Shown piece by piece: positions 5,912 through 32,690 of a DNA stretch of 64,000 nucleotides. Positions within the stretch are counted from its first letter, which is position 1. Each line of letters starts with the position of its first letter. The DNA is from Pelomyxa schiedti (taxonomy: Eukaryota > Protista > Evosea), in the NCBI GenBank assembly GCA_020536535.1, contig JAHLWZ010000869.1:1595-65594 (forward strand), written 5' to 3'. Both the position numbers and the translations under genes were made by a program. A model generated the notes under the pieces. The model was not told the DNA's origin and searched no databases. It saw nothing but the letters and a program-made list of their open reading frames with translations.

Positions 5912-8900
5912 TTAAGATTTGAAATTTTGTTTGTCTGCAGCCGACTTGGGGTCCAATCTATTAGCACTTAGAACAGTAAAACAATGCAGGAAAGGAGACA
6001 TACGTGGTGCCTACTCCTTGTACTACATTGTCAATTGTTTCTGGAAAGGTATTGTTTGTGAGAGTGAGGAACGCAAAGGCGGCGGAACAACCTGTGGCCG
6101 CGGCTATTGGGCTGAACACTACAACTGGAAGTGCCTTGAGTAATGCAAATAGGAATCCCTAGTTGACAGTGGGTTTAGTGTGTGTGCCGGTTGGAAAATG
6201 GCGTTTCACGCACAGTTCCGCCTGACTTGTGGTATTCTTCCATTGGAGTGCTGTACGCAGTCTCAGCAACGACTTGGAATTCTCGGGAGAGGCTGTTACA
6301 GGCAAGGCGGAGGCCGTCCTGGGTTCCTTGTGGAGCCGCCGGTTTCTTCCCACTGGGTGCACTGCTCTTTCCGCTCTGTTGTTTTGGGTTGGAATTTGTT
6401 CCTCACTCGCAGTAATCTACACACAAGCCAGTCATTGGTCCAAGATACGCCATCCCTTACATTCCCGCTAACGCATGAAAAGAAATCCAAAGCCTCCTTT
6501 CCAACAATCTGTTTATAATAAGTTTGACTTGTCCTATGTGTTACTATGTGCATGGTACTTACTGAGGCGAGGCCCACAACTCCGCGATTAATACCTTACG
6601 GAGAACACTTGTTCGTGAAAGGGTGCATTCATGAGAGTTGAGATTACCGAGAAGAAGGCTTCTGTCCTTTCTGTACTGGTCGATAGGAAGCAGAAAAACG
6701 TTCGCCATGCCACTTCCAAGATTCATGAATGTTCGGAGTGGTCTTACACCTTGGGGGAGGAAGGAAAAAGTTATTTCGAGGAATCGACTGGAATGTGGAT
6801 ACCTGTGGTTGTAACTTGAGCATATAACGTCAACTTGTTTGCAAACAGCTTGTTAACAACAACAACCAGAAGACTCCCCCAAGAATTGCATTCCATCTTG
6901 CAAAAGGATTTTTAGTTGCAGTTTTTTTTTTCCTTTCGTATTTGTACTTGATTTCCCTCCAAGAGAAGCCTAGGTAGTGAAATCTGAGCGCCACTGATTG
7001 TAAACAGGTTCCAAATTTCTTGGCTGGAATTTACTAGGTTTTTCAAGTCCAGTCTCTTTGCTACGTAGTCCAACGCGAATTTTATGGGGGCGATATCCAC
7101 TTGGTCTGAGTAAATGTGAGAGTCTGAACAAAGTCGACAAGCTACAAACCAAATACTATGTCATAACAAGGTAACTTAGTTTCATTTAGAACATACGCCC
7201 AATTTCCAAACAGCCATAATGCTGTATCTTGATCAATATGAAGTTTAAATGGGCGTACACCAAACTGCAGAAATTTAGAAACTAAAAGATTTCCGAAGTG
7301 TAATATTGAAAGGTACTTTGACAAGAACTCGGTCTTGGGTGATTCCCTCAGCAGGTGTACGAGATAAAACGGAGAACTCCATACCATGGAGTGCTGTGTG
7401 CCAAGGTTTGTCCCTATCAAATTCAAAGATCCTATTCAACTCGGAGCACATCAGGTGGTCTTGAAGCTGAATGACAGTCAGTCATTCCGAGCATTTAATT
7501 GATGCACTCAACCTCTAAATTCTGCAGTGTCAATGCGAAGTAAGAACTAAAAGCTCCCAAGGGAATTATGTAGTAACGAACTGTCATGCCAGAAAGACGC
7601 AAAAATATGCACTCTAAAAGAATTAAAATTTGCTGTGGGTTTTGAACTTGAACCTGATTTCTTGCGTTTACTGCTGGAATGTGCTGTGACAATGGGGTTT
7701 TCTGCCCATGGGTAATACGGGCTTGCTGTGGGAGCTGGCTTTTTTGATGTATCACTTGAGGAGGGGTCAGGCCAGTCCAGGTCACAACAAATCCGCATAG
7801 AAATGTTCAACTGCGCAATGACCACTATGTGTCCCGGGTTTTGACATCTGTTCATTTGATATGAAAAACCACACTCAAGGGAACCAACACCCAAGGGAAA
7901 AATACCCTGATGGGAGAGAAAGAATGGTCTGACATTCAGGTTTTTCAGAGATGTAATCATCCACCCTGTTCACAAAAAAAGGATGGGATGGGTTGTGAAA
8001 GTGAATGGCCGGTTCTGAACTTGAGACCTTGAGACTTGGTTATTTTGGGAGAGTAAAATTTTGGAGTTACATAAGAATGGGTGGATCTTGTGGGTGGAGT
8101 ATGTACGGAATCCACAAGTTTCGTTGGTAGCTCAGACTGGTTGTGTAGTGATGTTTGCAGGAATTTTGGGTCACAGAGGGGTATTATTCCTGGTGCATTG
8201 TTTGTGGAAGGGGAGATTAAAGGTGTTGCTTGCGTAAATGAGTATTGATTTAATAGCGGCACTGCTGGAAGTTGTGGGTTGGGACTAAAGGAAGGCAACG
8301 GCGATTGCACGGAAGTTGGGAAAGGTGGAAATGGAGCGGGAAGTGCCGTGTTCGACGGGAAAAATGGACTCTTTTGCGGCTGAGTTGATGGTTGTGGATT
8401 GAAAAATGGTTGAGAGTGCTGTAATTGGAGTGCTTGAGGGTTTTGAGGAAATGGTGGAAGTGGTGTAATTTGAGGAAAAGAAAACGGGGAAGTTGGTTGA
8501 TGTTGAGGGTTATTGTAGGGTACCTGCTGCTGTGGAAACGGTGGCTGTTGCAGAAAGTGAGGCTGCTGTGGAAATTGTGGCTGTTGCAGAAATGGTGTCT
8601 GCTGTGGCGGTTGCTGATGAAAGGGTGAAGTATGTGACCCAAAAGATGGGGGAGTTGTGAAGGAAATATCATGTGGGGTGTTCGTATCAGTTGTGATACT
8701 CCGAAAAGGGGAATGGGGTGGAGATGTGCCAGTTGCTGTGGAATGAAGCCCTGATAAACCCTTTTTAAATGAAAACTGTTGCATCTGTTGCTGAAGTAAT
8801 GTTTGTTGAGCTTGTTTTAAATGGGTAGGTAAGGGTAAATGTGGGTTGGAACTGGGGACTTGAATGCCTTCGTGTGTATCATCAAGTGGAATGGAAATGT

Positions 8901-11900
8901 CATCTTCGAATTCCTCGTTCGTGTGCGCATCCTGTTTGTGAGATTGTGTGGATGAGGAGGCTTCAATTTTGCGGAGTTCGGGCATGACTCCGCTCTGTAG
9001 AGGTGGGGGGATCGAGAACGTTGTGACAGGGGACCTTGATTTCCCCAGAGAGCACAGGTACTGAAGGAAATTGGCATTCAGGTATTGTTTGGAGTAGATT
9101 ATGAACTCAATCAGGACACTCAAGCTGTCAATGCAAAATTCCAAGTCAGCATGAATTTCCGAAAATTTGACCTGCGTGTTTTTTTGGTTATTTTGCTGTT
9201 TATGTATAAGGTTTTTAAAAAACCTTCAAAGGAGAGGAACCAAAGGGGGGCTTCAATTTAAGGGCAAAATCAAGATTTCCAACTTCGGCAAAATTCATTT
9301 CCTTTTTCAATGTGAAACGAACGTTAAAAAAAAACTTGGATACTTTCAAGTGAGTTGAGAAATTTTGGCTTGGTTGAAAAACGTCAGTGACTGACTTGGT
9401 CACAAAAAACTTCCACATGTGTGCTCTGATATCAAAGGTAGGTCTGGATGCAACAGGCAGAAATATCTTCAAAACCATTACCCATCCAGGTTTTCATGAG
9501 AAAAAAGAACCTTTGTCTGCCCAGTCAAAATTATGGCACATTTTGGTAAGAGGAAACCGAATTTCAAAGCAATGTCATTGGAGGAGATGTAAAACTGCTA
9601 GTGTTATTCATGATATGGCAGATATAAATCATACTGGGATGCCACGAGAAGGAGAAATGTTAGTAAATGAGAACGCAAGTAGGTTTTCTAGCCATGAGCC
9701 ACAGGAGTCTTTTGTTTGTTCATATTATGGAATTAATATATGAAGGAAGGGGTGGGGGCCAAAGACAGATACCTGGACACAGGTCAATTGTCAGGCCATC
9801 TACATGTATGGATATTGCCTGTGAGTGGGAAGCGTGGTCATGGACTTGGGCTCCCTCACGGAGGTATTTCCCAGAACTAAGTACGGAAGGAGTGGCCTGT
9901 GCATCTTCTGACTGTAACATCAGATTAATAACCAGAAAAAAAATTTTTTTCTGATATTGGGAAGGTGGATTTACGTCATTAAACTTTGTCTTATACAGTA
10001 CTGCTATAGGTGAGACTTTTGGTGCATGGCATAGTACAGTCAACGACTGCACACTGTTGACAAAGTAGTCCACCATCTAGATCTTCCCCAGTCAAAGAAA
10101 AAGTCTACAGGATTCATTTTTTAGGAAATAATACCCTTCCATGGAAGTTGAAAATGTGGATGTGAGTTAATTCCACAAAGCGGACCTCTTCCCACAGATG
10201 CATGTGATCTGATTCTGGGTGCTTGAGATTGATATAACCTAGCAGCAGAGTAAAAAACCACGATTTGTTGAGGAATGGAAACCAGTAGCGCATTTGAAAG
10301 TAATCGAGAAAGCATTCACATTTGGTTTCTATGATTTTTTTTTTTTTTTGTAATCACTTCAATGAGTTTGTACTCATTTCTTATGACTTACTGTTTGTTT
10401 AGAATAGTCTTGGCAGTAGGACTGAATAAAAGAAAGAAGCTGCTCATAAATCTTGGGGGTAAGATCCAGAGATAAATTTGGAACATCTATCTGCAATAAG
10501 TACATCTGCTACTGTGTTACCACTTGACACAATAACTTGGAATAGAGTACTGAAGCTTCTTGGGCAGCACCCATAAAAAACGATCTTTCATTTTTGGACA
10601 TCAGTGGAGACGGCCACGGGGTTGCTGAATAAGTTTCACTGTCGATGACTAATGTTGGCTGGGTGGAAAAGGGAGAATCTTTTGGCGCCTTCAAGGATTG
10701 CAACAATGTGGAGCCTATGTTGATACTATCACTGTTGAGGGGAACAGTTGGGGTTTCTGGCACACTGTGCTGGTTGGGAGGCAAAGTTTGTTCAGGTGAT
10801 TCTTCCTGAACTATAAGCTGGATAGGAGGCTCTTGGGATGTGTTAGTCTGAGGCATGGTGATCTCCAGTACACGTTGTGGAGCAGCTAAAGTTTTTGTTG
10901 GTGAAAAAAACCAAAAGAGACAATCAACCTGCATTTTCTTTGATGAAAGCTCTCAGAGTTTCAAAGTTGAAGGTGTATTTTCCCAAGGTACTTCTGAAAT
11001 TGAGTGGTATTTCATGTAACTCCAACGAGATACCTTTTCATAAACAACCCACAGGCTTCAACAATAAGTTCAGAGTGTTCAAAGAAATGGATTGAAGCAG
11101 TAATGGTCCTTGCTTTGACTGTGATATCTGTATTATGCCGAACTTGGTTCTGTTTTTGTTGGCTTTAATTTTTTTATTTTTTTGTATTTTATTTTGTGGG
11201 TGGTGGTAGGTTTTAGGGGTTTGTGCATTAAAATTATGATACCACAGGTTTTGCTAAGCTGATGTATTCCAAAATTCGGCTGTGGAAGTCACCTCTGGAA
11301 GATCTGAGGGGGATTAGATTATGTTTATTTCGGAGCCGAACCTCATTGAAAGAAATGACTGGCTCATACTGGTTCCATGTGAGGCAGTGCAAATTCCTTC
11401 CCAAAGAAAGAGTATGGGTTGCAATAAAGATGCAGCGTGAGAAGATGTTGCATCCCAAAAAACTTGAATATCAGGGAAGTCACACTTTATAGTGGCACTG
11501 GGACCGGTTTCTGAAAGCTGGAGATCATATGGCAGGAAATGAGTGACTCTAGTTTATGAATGATGTGTACCCTCAGTTTTATCTTAATGGAAAAAGGAGA
11601 ATCCATCAGAGATGTTTCACTGGAAGTAACCCTAAGGCATGGTCTGGGGAAGAAATTTGATACATTAATACTGAATGGAGGTAGTGAAGAACATACATGG
11701 TACTCAGGAGGGCTCCGTCTTCTTTTTGTTGTCAAATCATAACATACATGTATAAAGATGTGTAGAAAAGAAAAGGTGATAGTACCATATATGTTCTTTG
11801 CAATTCTCAGGCATGATTGAAACTTGAAGGAGCGCTTACTTTTAGTCCGTTTGTAAAGAGCGCTGAAATTGGATAAAGTTGCACAAATCTCAGTGGAGGG

Positions 11901-23673: not shown

Positions 23674-23899
23674 CGTCTCGTATTTATTGTTTTGTTTTGT
23701 TTTGAAGAATCTTTTTCTGGTTCTTTCTTTCTTTTTTTTTTTTTGATGTCAAAAGTGTCAAAAGCACTTGCGTACCCATCCGGAATCGGTACCTGCTCCA
23801 AGTTGTCCGCACAGACACAGACACAGCACCCACAAAACACCAGTAGGTTCTAAAGTGATTTGGAGTGTTTGGTTTGTTGAAAAAAATCAGAATTTTACA

Positions 23900-25230: not shown

Positions 25231-26430
25231 TCAACAGCAAGTCCTTTTCTTTGGTGGGGGAAAATCATCATCAGCCTCTGCTACAAGGTGGAGGGATGGT
25301 GCCTTGGAGAGGGTGGAATTTGTTAGGAAAGTGTATATTTGGTGGCACAGGTGCGAGAATGCAAGGTCCACATTGATTCCTTCTTTGGAACTGACTTCAC
25401 TGTAAAGCGGTTTAGTGCAAAGTGGTTACTGTGTTGAGGAACACAACAAGAATGAAACTCCGAGTGAATCAGCTAATTTCTGACCTTCCTCTGTAGAGAC
25501 TTCCCTGCGGCCCATCTCACACTGTGAAAGTTCAGTGATAAGAATAAGAAAGAAGGAATCCACCTTGTTTCCAATAAGAATCTTTACAGCGTTATCGCAG
25601 GCATATCTATCGATTTCACCGAGCCAGTGCTTAATATTTATAAATGACGGTTTGTTCGTCACATCACTGGTTGTGGAGGAGATTCTCATTAGCAGCATTA
25701 AAAAAGGAATGACAGAGCACACTATACAATGGCAATGCCATGAGCACCACGGTAATCTGATAGAGTTTCTAGTTCAACAATAGGAGTTTTGTTGTTTTAT
25801 GGAGACTTTACATGAACTCACAATGGTGCGGAATCTAATGAATAGTCTTTAGAAGACAAGAATATGATAAAAACTACTGCATACCTTTCGGAACCAGCTG
25901 TGTCCCACTGCGATAAAAGTTAACCTCATAATTATAGGAAGTGGAATTACTATTTGAAGTCGTATTGTGTGTGTTTCTAGTTGTACAGTTTTTAATTTCT
26001 AAGTGGAATTAACAAGGAAAAAACTATTAGAGTGAACGATAGGTTGGGGTCAGACATAGTCAACACCTATGTTGAAGATCAGCCCAAAAATTCTGCAAAG
26101 TAAATGACACACCAATGGTGCATGCATAATTTGGATCGTATCTATTTTCCTGGAGCTATTGAACAAAAAATAAAAAATGAAATAATACGGACTGTAAAGC
26201 GAAGAATAATGGAGCCTGAACAACCTAAGTAAAAACAGTTGACAAAGATGCTGGAAGTTACTTTTTCCCACGTTAGGGTCACCAATCATCAACAGTTTAT
26301 AGCTCTCCCTAGTGGAATAAACAAAGCGCACCGAAAACACAAATTTCCAGCAACACAGTGATTATTAAGGAAAAAGTTGTTGGACTCGTGCACACAAAAT
26401 AGGCTCATTCACGGGTGGTGTGCCACTCAT
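25231..26430 (-). CDS. Rab1-like small GTPase (divergent)
   Basis: Spliced: [74 protein letters not shown]-stop (CC prenylation motif). Confidence 0.9.
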
Positions 26431-26717
26431 TTCGCTATCTCTTCAAACAACCAATTTGTGAAGTTTGAACTTTTTAAAAAGGAAGTACTGTTACTTCAAG
26501 TGCTCTGACACTCTTACTGGATACACTGCAACTCCCCCTTGCGCAGGACACACGCAAGGTGTCTTCTGCTTAGATCTCAGATGGCTATCCTAGTTGCAGT
26601 TCCAAATCGGGAGAGTTTTCCTCTCGTTGTATAAACGCACTTCAATTCCGTGTTGCAACACAGCAGCTGGTCACTTCCACAGTCGCTCCACTTTAAACAA
26701 GCAAAGAAAACCTAAAC

Positions 26718-29700
26718 ATGCCACTCAAGGCACGCGGACGAGGAGGCAGAGGCCGAGGCCGAGGCGGCCGCGGCTCCGGCTTTCGTGGAGGTAAAGGCGC
26801 CAGGGGCGGCCGAGGAGGGTTCCCCAGCAGCAGCAGAGGGGTAGGCGATCCACAACGAGGGGGGCGCGGCCGAGGCAGCAGAAGGGGAGGCCGAGGCCGC
26901 GGCTGGGGAAGCACCACGGCGCCATACCTGAACGCAGATGCCTCCATGAGCTCCGACGATGATGAAGACGAGGAAGAGGAAGAGGAAGAGGAAGAGGACG
27001 ATGAGGACGAGGTTGTGGAGGTTAAGAAGCCCGCGGGGAAAGGTGCCAACAAGGGAAAGGGAAAAGGAAAGAAGGCGAGCGCCGACGGGGACGACGAGGA
27101 CTCCGGGGAGACGGCGACGGGGAAGAGGGGGCCAAACTGGCCGAGGAAGGGCGAGAAGGCCCAGGGCGAGGACGAGGACGAGACGGGGCCCACGCCCAGG
27201 AAGAAGCCGCGCAAGGCGTCGGCCCCAGCTGCGGTTGCTAAGAAAGTGCCCCCGGCCGAGGAGACTCCAAAGGCAAAGGCCAAGGCCAAGTCCAAGACGG
27301 GGAAGAAGGCCCAACCACCACAAAAGCAACAGCCTGCCGAGAAGAAGGAAAAACCACAAGCTAACGAAAAGCAGAATAAGCAGAAGCAGCAGCAGCAGCA
27401 ACAGTCACCAAAGAGCAAAAAGGGAAAGCCTGCTGAACCTTCTGAGAAGAAAACACCAACTGAAAAGGAAGCCGGAGTGAATGCCAAGGAAGGAGAGAAG
27501 AAAGCAAGCCAAGGAGAACAACCCACAGAGCCTAAGAAGCAAAGCAAGTCAAGTAAAAGAGCTCAAAAAAAGAAGCTGAAAGCGCTCGCAGCCAGTGCTG
27601 CAAGTGAAAAGGATAGTACACCAAAAGAAGCGCTCCCATCCACTGCACAAGTGAAGGACAACGAAATCTCAGAAGCCACTACTCAACCACCAGCAATACC
27701 CCTTGATCCAGTCTTGCCATTACCCGCAGACCACGTGCCAACTACTGCATCTCCTACCGAAAATATAGCACCAACCCCAGTTCCCACTACCGAAACTCCA
27801 TTGTCCACGTCTAACCCTCTATCTGAGTCCTCATCTAAAGCCACCTCTGAGCCAGCATCTACTACAGAGGCTACCCTTAAACCAGCGTCTGTGGCCCCAC
27901 CGATTGGAGTCTCCTCAATTTGTACCGTCCCTTTGGAACACCATGATGCCTATACAGGGAAAATTCTAAAGATCGACCTTACTGCTGTATGCCTATGAAA
28001 ATTTGTTTCTCTTGGAAACTGCTTACTAGGGAACTTGCATTGAAGAACCAACCTCTGCAGAGATGAAGCGCAAATGGGTTGGCGCAAGAGGCTTTGGCAC
28101 CAAGTGAGTCGATATACCTTTTATTTTCTTTTTCCCCTATGATATCGTTACATTAAGTGTAGGATTATCAGTGATTTAGTTGATCCCAAAATCGATCCTC
28201 TATCCCCTGCAAATGTCTTAGTTTGCGCTACGGGGCCTCTAACAGCAATTGGAATTTCTACTGGTTGTTTCACTTGGAATTCGCGCCACCACACTAATTT
28301 CCAATACACAGGAGCACGATGTACATTCGTGGCAAAAGGTGCCCTTACCAACACACTTTCCACTGCCAGTGTTGGCGGTAACTTCGGGATTTCACTCAAA
28401 CGAAGTGGGTATGATGCCATTGTTTTCACTGGCAAGTCTCCCGCACCAATCAATCTTGTTTTACGGGTTGGCACTCCGCTTCGTTAGCCGAGACTAACCT
28501 TAGAAAGGCGGGAGAGAGGCCCATTCTTGCTGATGCTTCCTCTCTTTGGGGTTCTGTTACATCTGCGACGTTTGAGGCCTTACACACCCAGTACAAACCT
28601 CTTAGCGTTGCTTGTATTGGCCCAGCAGGAGAAAAACTCAGGTATTTCAGTTGGAAAATAGTAACTGTGACTTAGTTGCTATGTAGTAAAATTGCTTGTA
28701 TAATGTCAGACAAAAAGCACGCAGCAGGGCGTGGAGGCCTTGGTGCTGTGATGGGATCAAAGAATGTGAAAGCAATCATTTGTTGTGGTGGTTCAGTAGT
28801 AAAACCACATGACGAAACACTCCTGCGAGAGGCATCGTCTGCATCTCATTTATGGTCCTTTCTAATGGCTTGTAAGGTGCATAAAGAAAAATGCAAAAAA
28901 ATGGTTGCAAACGGCGTTGTTGGGTTACTTACTAAGCATGGCACAAATGTCCTTATGAAAGGATGTAATGATGCAGGAATACTACCATCCCTGAACTTCA
29001 AGAGTGGTCATACTGATGCAACCACATGCGAACCAGTGTGTAATCAGGTTTTTTCCCTTCATTCTCACCTATGTGGCATATAGGCAACAGGAGAATATGT
29101 TACTGAGCATTATCTAAAAAAGAATGAAGGGTGCAATAACTGTCTTATTAGATGTGGCCGAGTTGTAGAAATAGAGGGGAAAACACTCTACGGTCCGGAG
29201 TATGGTAAAGCAATGTCTTTCCTTTCACCTTTGCTCACCTCCCTTAGAATCTGCCTGGGCCTTTGGTCCCAACTGTGAGTTTTTTTTTTTATATGCTCAT
29301 GAAATATTCTAAACATGAAAGGTGGAATATTCGATTTTGCTGCTATAACAAAAGCCAACGCTATATGCAATGAATATGGCATTGATACAATCAGCGCCGG
29401 TGGCACAATTTCCTGTGCAATGGAGATGCACGAGAAGGGCTACCTCTCGGAACCAATTAAATTTGGCGTAAGTTTGTTTTGACCATTTGAAAAGTTCTAA
29501 CCACGAAAATCAGAGTGCTGAAGCACTTGTCTCTTATATAGAGAAGATGGGCAAATTGGAACCAGGAATTGGAGAAGAACTTTCTGAAGGATCACTTCGG
29601 TTCTCCACAAAATATGGACACTCAGAATTTTCAATGACTGGTGAATTTTTTTGGTTATTTGCCACATCTTAACTCTTCCACCAGTGAAGGGGCAAGAGCT

Positions 29701-30419
29701 TCCTGCCTATGATCCACGAGGTCTTCAGGGAATGGGTATAGTGTTCCAACAGTAGTTTTGGTTACTTAAAGTGAATAGGATTGAACTACTCGACCTCAGT
29801 ACGTGGGGGATGCCATGTATACGGCTATACCACAGCCGTCGGTAAGAGCCAAAAGTATTTTGTGAAAATAACATGTTAAAGAGCATGTTGGCAACCCCAT
29901 AAAACTGGACCCAAAGGCTACAGATAGCAACAAGGTTGCAACTGTCATTGCATTCCAGAATACTGCAGCATTCATAGATGCTGTAGGAATGTGCTTGTTC
30001 TCGTCGTTCGCGTTGACTGCCGATGATTACACAGACTTGTTTTGTGCCGCAACTGGTTTGACTGGGATAGACAAGAGCACTTTTGGTGTAGAAGTTGGGG
30101 AAAGGTACAAACCAACACCTTTTGCGAATGGCGATTTACTTCTTCCAGAATATGGAATGCACAGAAACTGTTCAATGAAGCCGCAGGCTTCTCCTCCAAG
30201 GATGACACCCTCCCGACCCGTTTACTTAACCAGCCACTCGATTTCGGTGACCTTCAGGTTGCTTTCTCTCGGTCCAGTCCTGCCAGAAAGTCCTAACACC
30301 AACCAAAGGGCCAAACTTGGAAACGCGAAGAACTGCTGGGTCAGTACTACGCCCAGAGAGGCTGGGATGCCAACGGGAAGCCCACTCCTGAAAAACTCAC
30401 TGCACTGGGCTTGCTCTAA
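26718..30419 (+). CDS. Aldehyde:ferredoxin oxidoreductase (W/Mo-pterin AOR family) with ~410-aa low-complexity N-terminal extension
   Basis: [119 protein letters not shown]...LGLL-stop. More than ten GT-AG introns. Confidence 0.92.
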
Positions 30420-30849
30420 GCGAGTCCTACCACTACGGGGCCTTCCCTGTTCAGACAAATTTCCTTTAGTCTAAAACCTTTTTTTGGCTGGGGGTGAAGT
30501 TTTCCCGGCGTCCAAAATAATTAAGAAAAAGCATGCAATTCCGCGTACCACCAATTTCATCGCCCTTTTATGACAGTTGCACCTCTTTGCATATTTTCTC
30601 GTTGTGAAATAGGATTGACCTTTATCAGTACCATTTTTGATTGTGATATCCCACACGACTAACAACCTTCTCCCAGAACACCGAAGGAAAACCGTTTTTT
30701 TTTTGTTTTGCTGCTGGGCTTCGTTGGTGTCCCGGTGGGGATTTCGCTGTGTGTTGCATCTTTTTAAAATTTTTTTTGGTGGGCTAATTCGTTCGTTCTT
30801 TAAAACTGTTGTTGTTTGTGTAGGAGTAGTGTTTAGAGGAAGGAACATT

Positions 30850-32690
30850 AAGTCAAAATGCTGGAATGTAGTGTTGTTGTTGTTGGCAGGAACGAGTGTG
30901 GACGGGCCATTGAGACTAGAATATTGCAGTCGTTCTCTACAGTGGTAATATCCTTTTGCTAATGTACTGTTACTTTTTGCCCAGAAAATAGTTGTAACAT
31001 ACCTTATAATAAAAAGGCACCTCTTAGGGAGTTGCTTGATACAGCAGTGGCTGCAGTGGGGGAGAATAGTCAATATTTGAGGGTTTGGGCAGTTCTGAAA
31101 GGAAGAATAATCCGAGATCAATCTGCTCCATTAAGTTCTCTTCTTAATCTATTAGGTACCTACTACACAGATAAATGCGTTTACTGTATCCCTTCGTTAT
31201 ACTTATAAACAAACCATCACGCAGGCTCCCCTCCCGTTCTCCACGTTTGCTTTTCCCCTCGAAAAATTACTGCCCCACTCAAGCAAATAACAATGGGAAC
31301 ACTATTTTGCACTCCGCACCCTGTTTCAGAGAGTTCTGAAGTAAAAAATACCTCCACTCCTCAACCTCTTTTAACAATAGAAAGATTTGTTCAAATGCGG
31401 TGACAGCACTATCGCAATCCACAGAACAGCCTTGGGTTCCATGTGACTGGATAAAAGTGAGAATATTTTTCGTTTGGTGTGTTATTAAGGTCCACCCTGA
31501 CAGGGACTGCAAAAGCTAGAGTCCATTCTGCAGGTGACTACACCGACAGAAAGTAGTGAAACGATGAAGCTTGGTAAAGCCTTCTCTCATGCCCTCTAAG
31601 TGCCAACTACTTCTAGCAAATATTATCTCCCATGCCTGTTTATCGCTCTCAGACTTGCAACTCCAGTTACGAGGTTTACTGATCTCTGAATCTGAACTTG
31701 ACAATCATTGGTAGGAACACAATACAACTTGAAATTTGCTTAAAATCTTAGTGTAACCAACGTGGGACCTAAGGCTATAGAGGAATGCCAAAAAATGGCA
31801 TCAACCCTAACAGTAATGGCTGCAACTTTGTCAAGCTTCAGTGGTTTAAACCAACACTCTGACACACATCTCTTTACCTCCAGCATTGGTCTCCTCTCCG
31901 TTCAATCAACCCGTGAACCAATGCTCAAAAAACCCACTCGGCTTCAACTTGCATTCATGCTGGGTACAGTTGAGAGACCTCTTCCTGCACATAACCACGG
32001 ACTTGTATGCCTTTCCTGATATGACTGGGATACCGTTTTCCCTTCACCTTTTGTTCCTTACATCGAAATAGGACCAACTGAACAACCACGATCATACCTG
32101 TTTTATTTATGACGCCCACCATGTGGCACTGTGCCTCATCCTCCAGATGATTCTCACGGCATTTCAAGCCGGTGGAGCTTTTCTAGGGATTATTAACAAA
32201 CAATGCATTCAAGATACTCGCAAAGCACTTAGTAATCTGGGAATGGCTCCGGACCAACTACTAGAATCCAAGCGAATTGCATTCGTTGACAACGATGCCT
32301 ACCTAGAAGTACCTAAGCCACTTTTGCGATTAATATAGAATGACAGAGTTATGACTATTATTACGCTCAAACTAATACCAACCAAAGGAAAAACCTTCTG
32401 CACAAACACGGGAACTCGGTGTGAGAGATTTGCTTCAGAACACTTTGACATCATCTGGACTGGACAACTTATATGTTGTTGGTGATGTCAGATATCCTGG
32501 TGATCAGCCACAGCCCGCACAGGACTTTTTTAGCAACCAAATTCTGGAATATGAGAAGATAATAACACCAGGGACGTATACACTGCTTTCCGCAAGAGGG
32601 ATATGTTTATATGAGAGGACTGCATTCCCTCCCCCATTCCTTGATAGCCTTGTTGCCACTCATAGATTTGAGCTCACTGCACACTCATAG
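30850..32690 (+). CDS. Multi-exon protein with C-terminal MEDS sensory domain; N-terminal part possibly ubiquitin-like
   Basis: Exons 32072-32690 give HDHTCFIYD...RKALSNLGMAPDQLLESKRIAFVDNDAYL...LYVVGDV...ILEYEKII...GICLYERTAFPPPFLDSLVATH, matching the MEDS pattern from memory. Start codon not located. Confidence 0.65.

Follow-up and report, generated by a model that had tools for sequence, protein, structure and literature searches.

In a 64,000-nucleotide (nt) stretch of contig JAHLWZ010000869.1 from the assembly GCA_020536535.1 of the anaerobic amoeba Pelomyxa schiedti (hereafter the window), we identified a gene for an archaeal-type aldehyde:ferredoxin oxidoreductase (AOR) whose first exon encodes, in one frame with the beginning of the enzyme, an N-terminal extension composed of an RGG box, a poly-D/E tract, a Lys-rich region and a Pro/Thr/Ser/Ala-rich linker. 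This is a genuine nuclear gene of P. schiedti with 16 exons, and its product measures 1004 amino acids (aa) if the start is Met1. The explanation we favor, with a probability of roughly 0.78, is a real, translated and copy-specific fusion of extension and AOR core. In this gene, a complete and selectively maintained core is preceded by about 410 predicted-disordered residues, with translation most likely from Met1, which has an A at -3, or, on transcripts starting at 26880, from Met77.

The case for a fusion begins with the start codon. The core lacks an AUG of its own, and the only in-frame Mets ahead of it are residue 1 (26718) and residue 77 (26946), the next being residue 435, within the fold; by ordinary scanning, the enzyme is therefore apparently made only from Met1 or Met77, as a fusion. 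A preliminary description of this locus, made from its sequence, had also counted two in-frame Mets; the number and the position of the first were right, while the second lies at residue 77 rather than at about residue 75. Its proposal of an in-frame fusion is supported: this is one gene with one open reading frame (ORF), and RNA confirms the junction between exons 1 and 2.

That frame is open far beyond chance. The listed ORF (26718..27998, + strand, 426 aa) is uninterrupted, with a coding part that stops at 27986 before an RNA-confirmed GT donor at 27987. Frame 0 of exon 1 contains no stop, compared with 8 and 22 in the other two + frames, and sequences shuffled locally within 90-nt blocks average 11.6 stops, with 0 of 5000 open, so that the continuous reading from RGG box through poly-D/E, Lys-rich and Pro/Thr segments into AOR stands as first described. 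The exon is T-poor (139 T in 1269 nt), which makes open frames cheap in it. Each third of the extension taken by itself would be open by chance with P of about 0.012-0.024 (P = 0.012 for the 330-nt linker). Within the RGG box, Gly is encoded by 4 codons and Arg by 5, which argues for a protein-level pattern rather than a mere nucleotide repeat, and both other frames contain a stop. Two ORFs in other frames, 26959-27480 (+) and 26693-27547 (-), were rejected as low-complexity by-products.

Gene model, transcripts and public record

The gene model was built with contigs from three single-cell RNA runs (X1-X3) and one genomic-type run (X4), all from one study, placed on positions 25600-30700; only contigs were used, so depth and transcript ends are not reliably readable from them. 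According to the P. schiedti papers, the genome derives from amplified single cells and the RNA libraries are Smart-seq2. The parts of the gene, in window positions, are as follows.

26431-26717, no strand: intergenic region, presumed promoter and 5' untranslated region (5'UTR) of the AOR gene, from public gene calls
26718-27986, + strand: exon 1, extension plus first 13 AOR residues; 1269 nt, 423 codons, phase 0 at its 3' end; donor GT at 27987; joint 27986>28030 in RNA contigs X1 and X3
26880, + strand: cDNA 5' end in RNA contig X2 (depth 3.7), preceded by the loose letters GCAGAGTACATGGG
28030-30420, + strand: exons 2-16, AOR core, residues 424-1004, stop codon TAA; from RNA joints, splice signals, the open frame and Pfam
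28030-28103, 28163-28263, 28312-28466, 28508-28641 and 28687-28831, + strand: exons 2-6
28877-29035, 29084-29204, 29248-29274, 29322-29467 and 29514-29640, + strand: exons 7-11
29685-29735, 29779-29841, 29882-30104, 30149-30257 and 30309-30420, + strand: exons 12-16
28832-28876, + strand: GC-AG intron, 45 nt, in frame and stop-free; removed in RNA contigs from three runs, kept by the GenBank model

All 15 intron joints are seen in RNA contigs, and the introns, once the stated shifts of the joints are allowed for, comprise 14 of GT-AG type and 1 of GC-AG type, with lengths of 40-59 nt. Joining the 16 exons yields an open frame of 1004 codons, with its TAA ending at 30420. For exon 1, the first record of RNA contig X1 is colinear over 27803-27986 (184 nt into the linker) and is then spliced to exon 2, a joint also crossed by an X3 contig, while a 319-nt X2 contig covers 26880-27184 and is colinear through the GAA repeat. 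We take the loose letters GCAGAGTACATGGG at the 5' end of the latter to be the 3' end of the Smart-seq2 template-switch oligo; one cDNA thus ended at 26880, which may be a start site or else a point where reverse transcriptase stopped in sequence of 75% GC. A search of the RNA contigs found no joint leading from an alternative first exon into the core within 25600-30700, an arrangement that the preliminary description had named as one that would overturn its reading. We also considered extra introns inside exon 1: no credible one exists in the T-poor stretch 27185-27710, and the candidates in 27711-27971 lie mostly inside the colinear RNA of 27803-27986.

The same gene is present in the public record. 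Searching a representative protein library with a 73-aa exon returned a 603-aa protein at 61% identity, which is KAH3759801.1, a P. schiedti aldehyde:ferredoxin oxidoreductase, and using this as a query retrieved a second P. schiedti entry, KAH3745497.1, an AOR of 1019 aa with the extension included. The latter is encoded on JAHLWZ010000869.1, and its gene has the same neighbors there as in the window. The sole difference between KAH3745497.1 and our RNA-based model is 15 extra residues from the unspliced GC-AG intron, at whose equivalent position the shorter AOR has a GT-AG intron; the correct AOR product is 1004 aa, not GenBank's 1019 aa, and the retained intron in the public model needs correcting before the protein is expressed. 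The extension is thus already present in the GenBank annotation, but it is unremarked in the literature searched: full-text searches for AOR with Pelomyxa or Mastigamoeba found no paper, and AOR is unmentioned in the P. schiedti papers (for the organelle paper, its main text and two supplementary files).

The window as a whole is eukaryotic and intron-rich. Upstream, the region 26431-26717 lies between AOR and an Arf/Ras-like GTPase gene transcribed divergently from it, whose coding sequence ends at 26430 (-), leaving 287 nt between the two genes; it contains one out-of-frame ATG, at 26581. The next downstream gene on the + strand, at 30858-32690 (7141-8973 of the public-contig stretch L002, to whose positions 23717 is added to obtain window positions), is given a prokaryote-type MEDS domain (PF14417) by public gene calls and is a second bacterial-looking gene, adjoining AOR.

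Composition and likenesses of the extension

The extension falls into four blocks of contrasting charge, followed in the same exon by the start of the enzyme fold.

26718-26945, + strand: GAR/RGG box, residues 1-76; Gly 36%, Arg 22%, 7 RGG, 17 RG, net charge +17
26946-27017, + strand: Met77 and poly-D/E tract, residues 77-100; 79% D/E, net charge -19; partly a (GAGGAA)n array
27018-27617, + strand: Lys-rich, histone-H1-tail-like K/A/P/E/Q region, residues 101-300; Lys 24%, net charge +26; in-frame arrays of period 3, 6 and 9
27618-27947, + strand: acidic Pro/Thr/Ser/Ala-rich linker, non-repetitive, residues 301-410; net charge -9
27948-27986, + strand: start of the AOR fold, residues 411-423, no Met; aligns with the first residues of AORs

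In the RGG box, RGG occurs at residues 8, 15, 23, 29, 32, 47 and 56, those at 23-34 forming a tri-RGG motif, that is, three RGG spaced by 0-4 residues, and the box carries GFRGG/RGGF motifs typical of GAR domains. Residues 101-300 contain motifs resembling a nuclear localization signal (NLS), namely PRKKPRKA, QKKKLKAL and one bipartite-like; matches to K-K/R-x-K/R, the core of the classical importin-alpha NLS, lie at 162, 209, 234 and 285, with the bipartite-like one at 273, patterns that are to be expected where Lys makes up 24% of the residues. The extension contains in-frame arrays with periods of 3, 6 and 9, namely (GAGGCC), (GAGGAA), (AAGGGA), (AAGGCC) and (AGC), and such micro-satellites indicate that at least part of the extension grew by slippage. 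GC content falls sharply at about 27300, from 60-75% (26718-27299) to 44-51% (27300-27947), and GC at third codon positions (GC3) is 0.62-0.79 in the first 194 codons, 0.37-0.45 in the rest of the extension and 0.40 in the core. This drop suggests an extension of two parts that differ in age or origin, and hints that the GC3-rich first 194 codons came from a separate source, for which no donor was found.

Searches for relatives of the extension were negative throughout. The 423-aa product of exon 1 has no match in Pfam at E <= 0.1; a word-indexed search with the same product returned nothing at E <= 1e-3 among library proteins of 233-740 aa; a feature search of the ESM Atlas gave no usable match for the extension; and BLAST against the remaining window and the paralog locus found nothing. 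AlphaFold2, run on the single sequence without an alignment, gave residues 1-400 no secondary structure, with a predicted local distance difference test (pLDDT) score mostly below 50 and no 10-residue block averaging above 51. The block-charged extension is accordingly predicted to be disordered, though a single-sequence run is weak evidence of this.

The preliminary description had likened this region to nucleolin/GAR-type RNA-binding and condensate-forming regions, a likeness that holds for composition and the tri-RGG motif and fails for the rest, there being no RRM, no Pfam match and no detectable homolog. With the GAR/RGG domains of fibrillarin, GAR1 and the nucleolin C-terminus the extension shares clustered RGG/RG, interspersed Phe and tri-RGG; unlike nucleolar GAR proteins, it comes without an RRM, a methyltransferase or other folded partner, or sequence homology, and it is joined to a metabolic redox enzyme. 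The block order also differs from that of nucleolin, in which RRMs lie between an acidic N-terminal region and a C-terminal GAR, since here the GAR comes first. Nopp140/SRP40 and histone-H1 tails offer a further parallel in their acidic and Lys/Ala/Pro blocks, KAKAKAK-type stretches and NLS-like clusters, but the extension has one acidic block (77-100) instead of about ten alternating acidic-Ser/basic repeats, and neither the repeats with the conserved C-terminal domain that define Nopp140/SRP40 (SRP40_C) nor a linker-histone globular domain is present, so the likeness is compositional only. Organelle presequences on laterally acquired enzymes of anaerobic protists likewise combine an enzyme of prokaryotic origin with a eukaryote-made N-terminal addition; unlike these short, amphipathic presequences, the extension has about 410 residues in RGG, poly-acidic and poly-Lys blocks.

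The enzyme core, its paralog and the origin of the extension

The core is a recognizable and intact AOR. Exons 3, 4 and 6 match Pfam AFOR_N (PF02730) at profile positions 37-66, 71-118 and 164-198, with E from 5e-06 to 9e-12 and two of the three exceeding the gathering score singly; exons 7, 10 and 14 match AFOR_C (PF01314, domains 2 and 3) with E from 2e-04 to 6e-16; and whole KAH3745497.1 bears both precomputed AFOR domains. Inspection of the translated exons found the CxxCxxxC motif with a fourth Cys, RGGCH and the pterin motifs intact; these presumably supply the four [4Fe-4S] Cys ligands and the two pterin-phosphate motifs, roles that we assign from Pyrococcus furiosus AOR. The exons match solved AOR structures, and the alignment of exon 4 starts at chain residue 76, so that residue 1 of a normal AOR falls at about residue 409; residues 411-423 indeed align with the first residues of AORs, as expected from the earlier account of a normal AOR N-terminus. 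Archaeal AORs start M(D/N)(G/A)YAGKIL, where the paralog reads MASHNDAYVGKILRVDLTA. With the archaeal enzymes (P. furiosus, PDB 1AOR; Methanomicrobiales), the core of residues ~409-1004 shares AFOR_N and AFOR_C and the Cys and pterin motifs; those of Methanoculleus and Methanofollis are about 50% identical to it, with homology from their very first residues. Unlike them, the P. schiedti gene is spliced (15 introns), lacks the core AUG and has about 410 predicted-disordered residues ahead.

The paralog, KAH3759801.1 (603 aa, at 6001-8627 of the public stretch L001), has a core 69-70% identical to that of the extended copy and likewise 16 exons, equal in length except for exon 1 (57 vs. 1269 nt) and exon 5 (143 vs. 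134 nt). All 15 intron positions and phases are common to both copies, so the duplication is later than intron gain. Between the cores, the nonsynonymous divergence dN is 0.24-0.26 with the synonymous divergence dS saturated, and 266 of the 417 identical residues differ in codon, which together indicate an old duplication under strong purifying selection and no pseudogene. Homology between the copies starts at H-x-D-A-Y, and nothing upstream aligns: the 57-nt exon 1 of the paralog has no extension and, unlike the extended copy, carries the AUG of the core, and the DNA upstream of it is unlike the extension. The paralog begins MASHNDAYVGKIL, its start lying 75 nt from a divergent neighboring gene, which is Cyt-b5-like (L001 5046-6001); as this gap illustrates, promoters and leaders can be very compact in this genome.

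Among the closest non-Pelomyxa prokaryotic or environmental AORs listed, all 118 measure 574-611 aa, the named ones being mostly from Methanomicrobiales at about 50% identity. Together with the 57-nt exon 1 of the paralog, these lengths imply that a short N-terminus is ancestral and that about 1212 nt were gained 5' in exon 1. The comparison thus shows that the extension is a derived feature, which arose in this copy alone as exon 1 grew at its 5' side.

An environmental contig (L003; JGI 3300029591, Ga0307353_103092) encodes the nearest relative of the extended copy, at 73% identity; it begins MSTTKDAYAGKIL, has a Met at the same position as the Met of the paralog, and groups as (paralog,(extended copy, L003)) with support 96/95. 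We considered it as an extension-less ortholog and have withdrawn it as clean evidence, since the contig is chimeric with a junction that overlaps the ATG: positions 76-368 are an archaeal-type signal recognition particle (SRP) RNA (Rfam, 95.8 bits vs. a gathering score of 96.5; E 1.8e-22 to 4.5e-22), and over 1-1228 this RNA is joined head-to-tail to an intron-free Pelomyxa-type AOR cDNA, with a 1-nt frame shift near 721. The arrangement suggests that reverse transcriptase may have switched template, passing from the 5' end of an mRNA with a short leader onto an abundant archaeal RNA, perhaps that of a methanogen symbiont. Elsewhere, the AOR matches in Pelomyxa sp. JSP (EukProt) are C-terminal fragments only, and all AORs retrieved by a metagenome scan using the N-domain are prokaryotic, at an identity of 49% or less.

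For both P. schiedti AORs, the prokaryotic enzymes that come closest are those of Methanomicrobiales, with an identity of about 50%. The obligate methanogen symbiont of P. schiedti, Ca. Methanoregula pelomyxae, likewise belongs to the Methanomicrobiales (PMC10579272). The stem of the Pelomyxa clade is long (1.08), which together with the 15 shared introns points to an old transfer of AOR.

Alternative readings and possible roles

Several observations weigh against a fusion translated from Met1 whose tail has a function. The sole marked cDNA 5' end, at 26880, is downstream of Met1, and the RGG box may therefore be missing from some transcripts; positions 27185-27802 are covered by none of the RNA pieces listed and rest on DNA contigs; no individual RNA molecule or contig was found to reach from Met1 to the core; exon 1 has an RNA depth 4-7 times below that of the core, although contig means of this sort are unreliable; for the first 54 codons taken alone, the chance of an open frame is P = 0.40; and, with no homolog in any searched length class and no ortholog shown to share the extension, there is no conservation evidence for a function of the tail.

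The preliminary description had itself pointed to an assembly chimera; single-cell whole-genome amplification would then have joined unrelated low-complexity sequence to an AOR gene. The genome does come from amplified single cells, and the DNA contigs, colinear over 25600-26952 and 27019-30700, break at the GAA repeat 26953-27018, though the placement method skips repeats there. We nevertheless consider a chimera scarcely credible: the independent X4 contig build is colinear across 27019-30700 at a depth of 72.8, and RNA contigs bridge 26880-27184, GAA repeat included, and 27803 into exon 2, leaving 27185-27802 as the only part seen on DNA alone. Nor is it probable that the extension goes untranslated with the enzyme, through a shorter transcript, non-AUG or internal initiation, or as part of a transcribed pseudogene. 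The lower RNA depth of exon 1 and the gap at 27185-27802 fit such an account, but the next in-frame AUG after 26946 is that of residue 435, while the out-of-frame AUGs at 27481 and 27943/27946 would intercept scanning and so spoil translation from shorter transcripts; the frame is also open far beyond chance, the core is intact and its dN/dS lies far below 1, and the spliced RNA contig reaches 184 nt upstream of the core. An unlikely but less easily dismissed variant keeps the fusion and moves its start to Met77, with transcription from near 26880, the RGG box acting as promoter or 5'UTR and a protein of 928 aa. In its favor are the 26880 end itself, whose switch-oligo tail is preceded in the genome by AGC, not GGG, and so does not resemble strand invasion, the lack of any listed RNA piece and a binned RNA depth of 0 upstream of this position, and the chance openness of the first 54 codons. 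Against it, the first AUG after 26880 is the out-of-frame one at 26938, which opens a 3-codon upstream ORF (26938-26949, ATG CCT CCA TGA) that overlaps the Met77 AUG and is relevant only to transcripts starting at 26880; the context of Met77 is poor (T at -3, where Met1 has A); the RGG box combines 4 Gly and 5 Arg codons with GFRGG/RGGF motifs typical of GAR domains and with stops in both other frames; and reverse transcriptase is likely to stop in a repetitive region of 75% GC, the end being known from a single contig at depth 3.7.

A different question is whether a translated tail does anything. After the duplication, the copy may have lost its own AUG and come to use an upstream one, with slippage inflating the sequence between and the frame kept for the sake of the enzyme, so that the tail would have no role in localization; the dependence of the enzyme on an upstream AUG explains the open frame by itself. 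The in-frame micro-satellite arrays favor such a nearly neutral passenger, as do the missing homologs and signs of conservation and the absence of the extension from the paralog and all near relatives. The 330-nt Pro/Thr/Ser linker, on the other hand, is non-repetitive yet open (P = 0.012), the high GC3 of the first 194 codons next to the 0.37-0.45 that follows hints at capture of foreign coding sequence and not at local drift, and ordered RGG, acidic, basic and linker blocks with an SV40-like PRKKPRK would seem unlikely to be inert in a eukaryotic cell. We hold the passenger account as a tentative possibility, about as likely as a change of localization caused by the tail.

Under such a change of localization, the tail, with its successive blocks of +17, -19, +26 and -9, would hang off the AOR as a multivalent polyampholyte that may bind nucleic acids, other polyanions and import receptors; the solved P. 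furiosus AOR is a dimer. The NLS-like Lys clusters and the tri-RGG would then shift part of this isoform to the nucleus, the nucleolus or RNA-rich assemblies, much as the preliminary description had proposed for the enzyme, with the paralog staying cytosolic. That the tail does move part of the isoform in this way is conceivable, and we put it forward tentatively; that it is a working address label, delivering AOR to the nucleus, the nucleolus, chromatin or RNA-rich condensates, is a good deal more doubtful. To our knowledge, no AOR-family enzyme has been placed in a nuclear compartment. An address label, if real, would allow removal of genotoxic aldehydes beside nucleic acids, or coupling to perinuclear methanogen symbionts, and the short paralog would serve the cytosol. 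Methanogen symbionts cluster around the nucleus in P. schiedti (PMC10579272).

Comparative surveys describe the AOR family from bacteria and archaea only and list eukaryotes with other molybdoenzyme families (PMC6147048). P. schiedti has at least two spliced AOR copies, and the extended one shows a possible fate of such a gene after settling in a eukaryote, with its start codon lost and a long, host-made disordered head, laid out in charge like nucleolar or chromatin proteins, now needed. Should the head direct localization, the paralog pair would constitute a natural experiment—the enzyme with and without a tail—with implications for the re-addressing of laterally acquired enzymes and for the possible activity of a ferredoxin-dependent aldehyde oxidoreductase near nucleic acids. 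Should it be neutral, the gene would be a clean case of a start-codon shift and in-frame slippage making a large disordered region.

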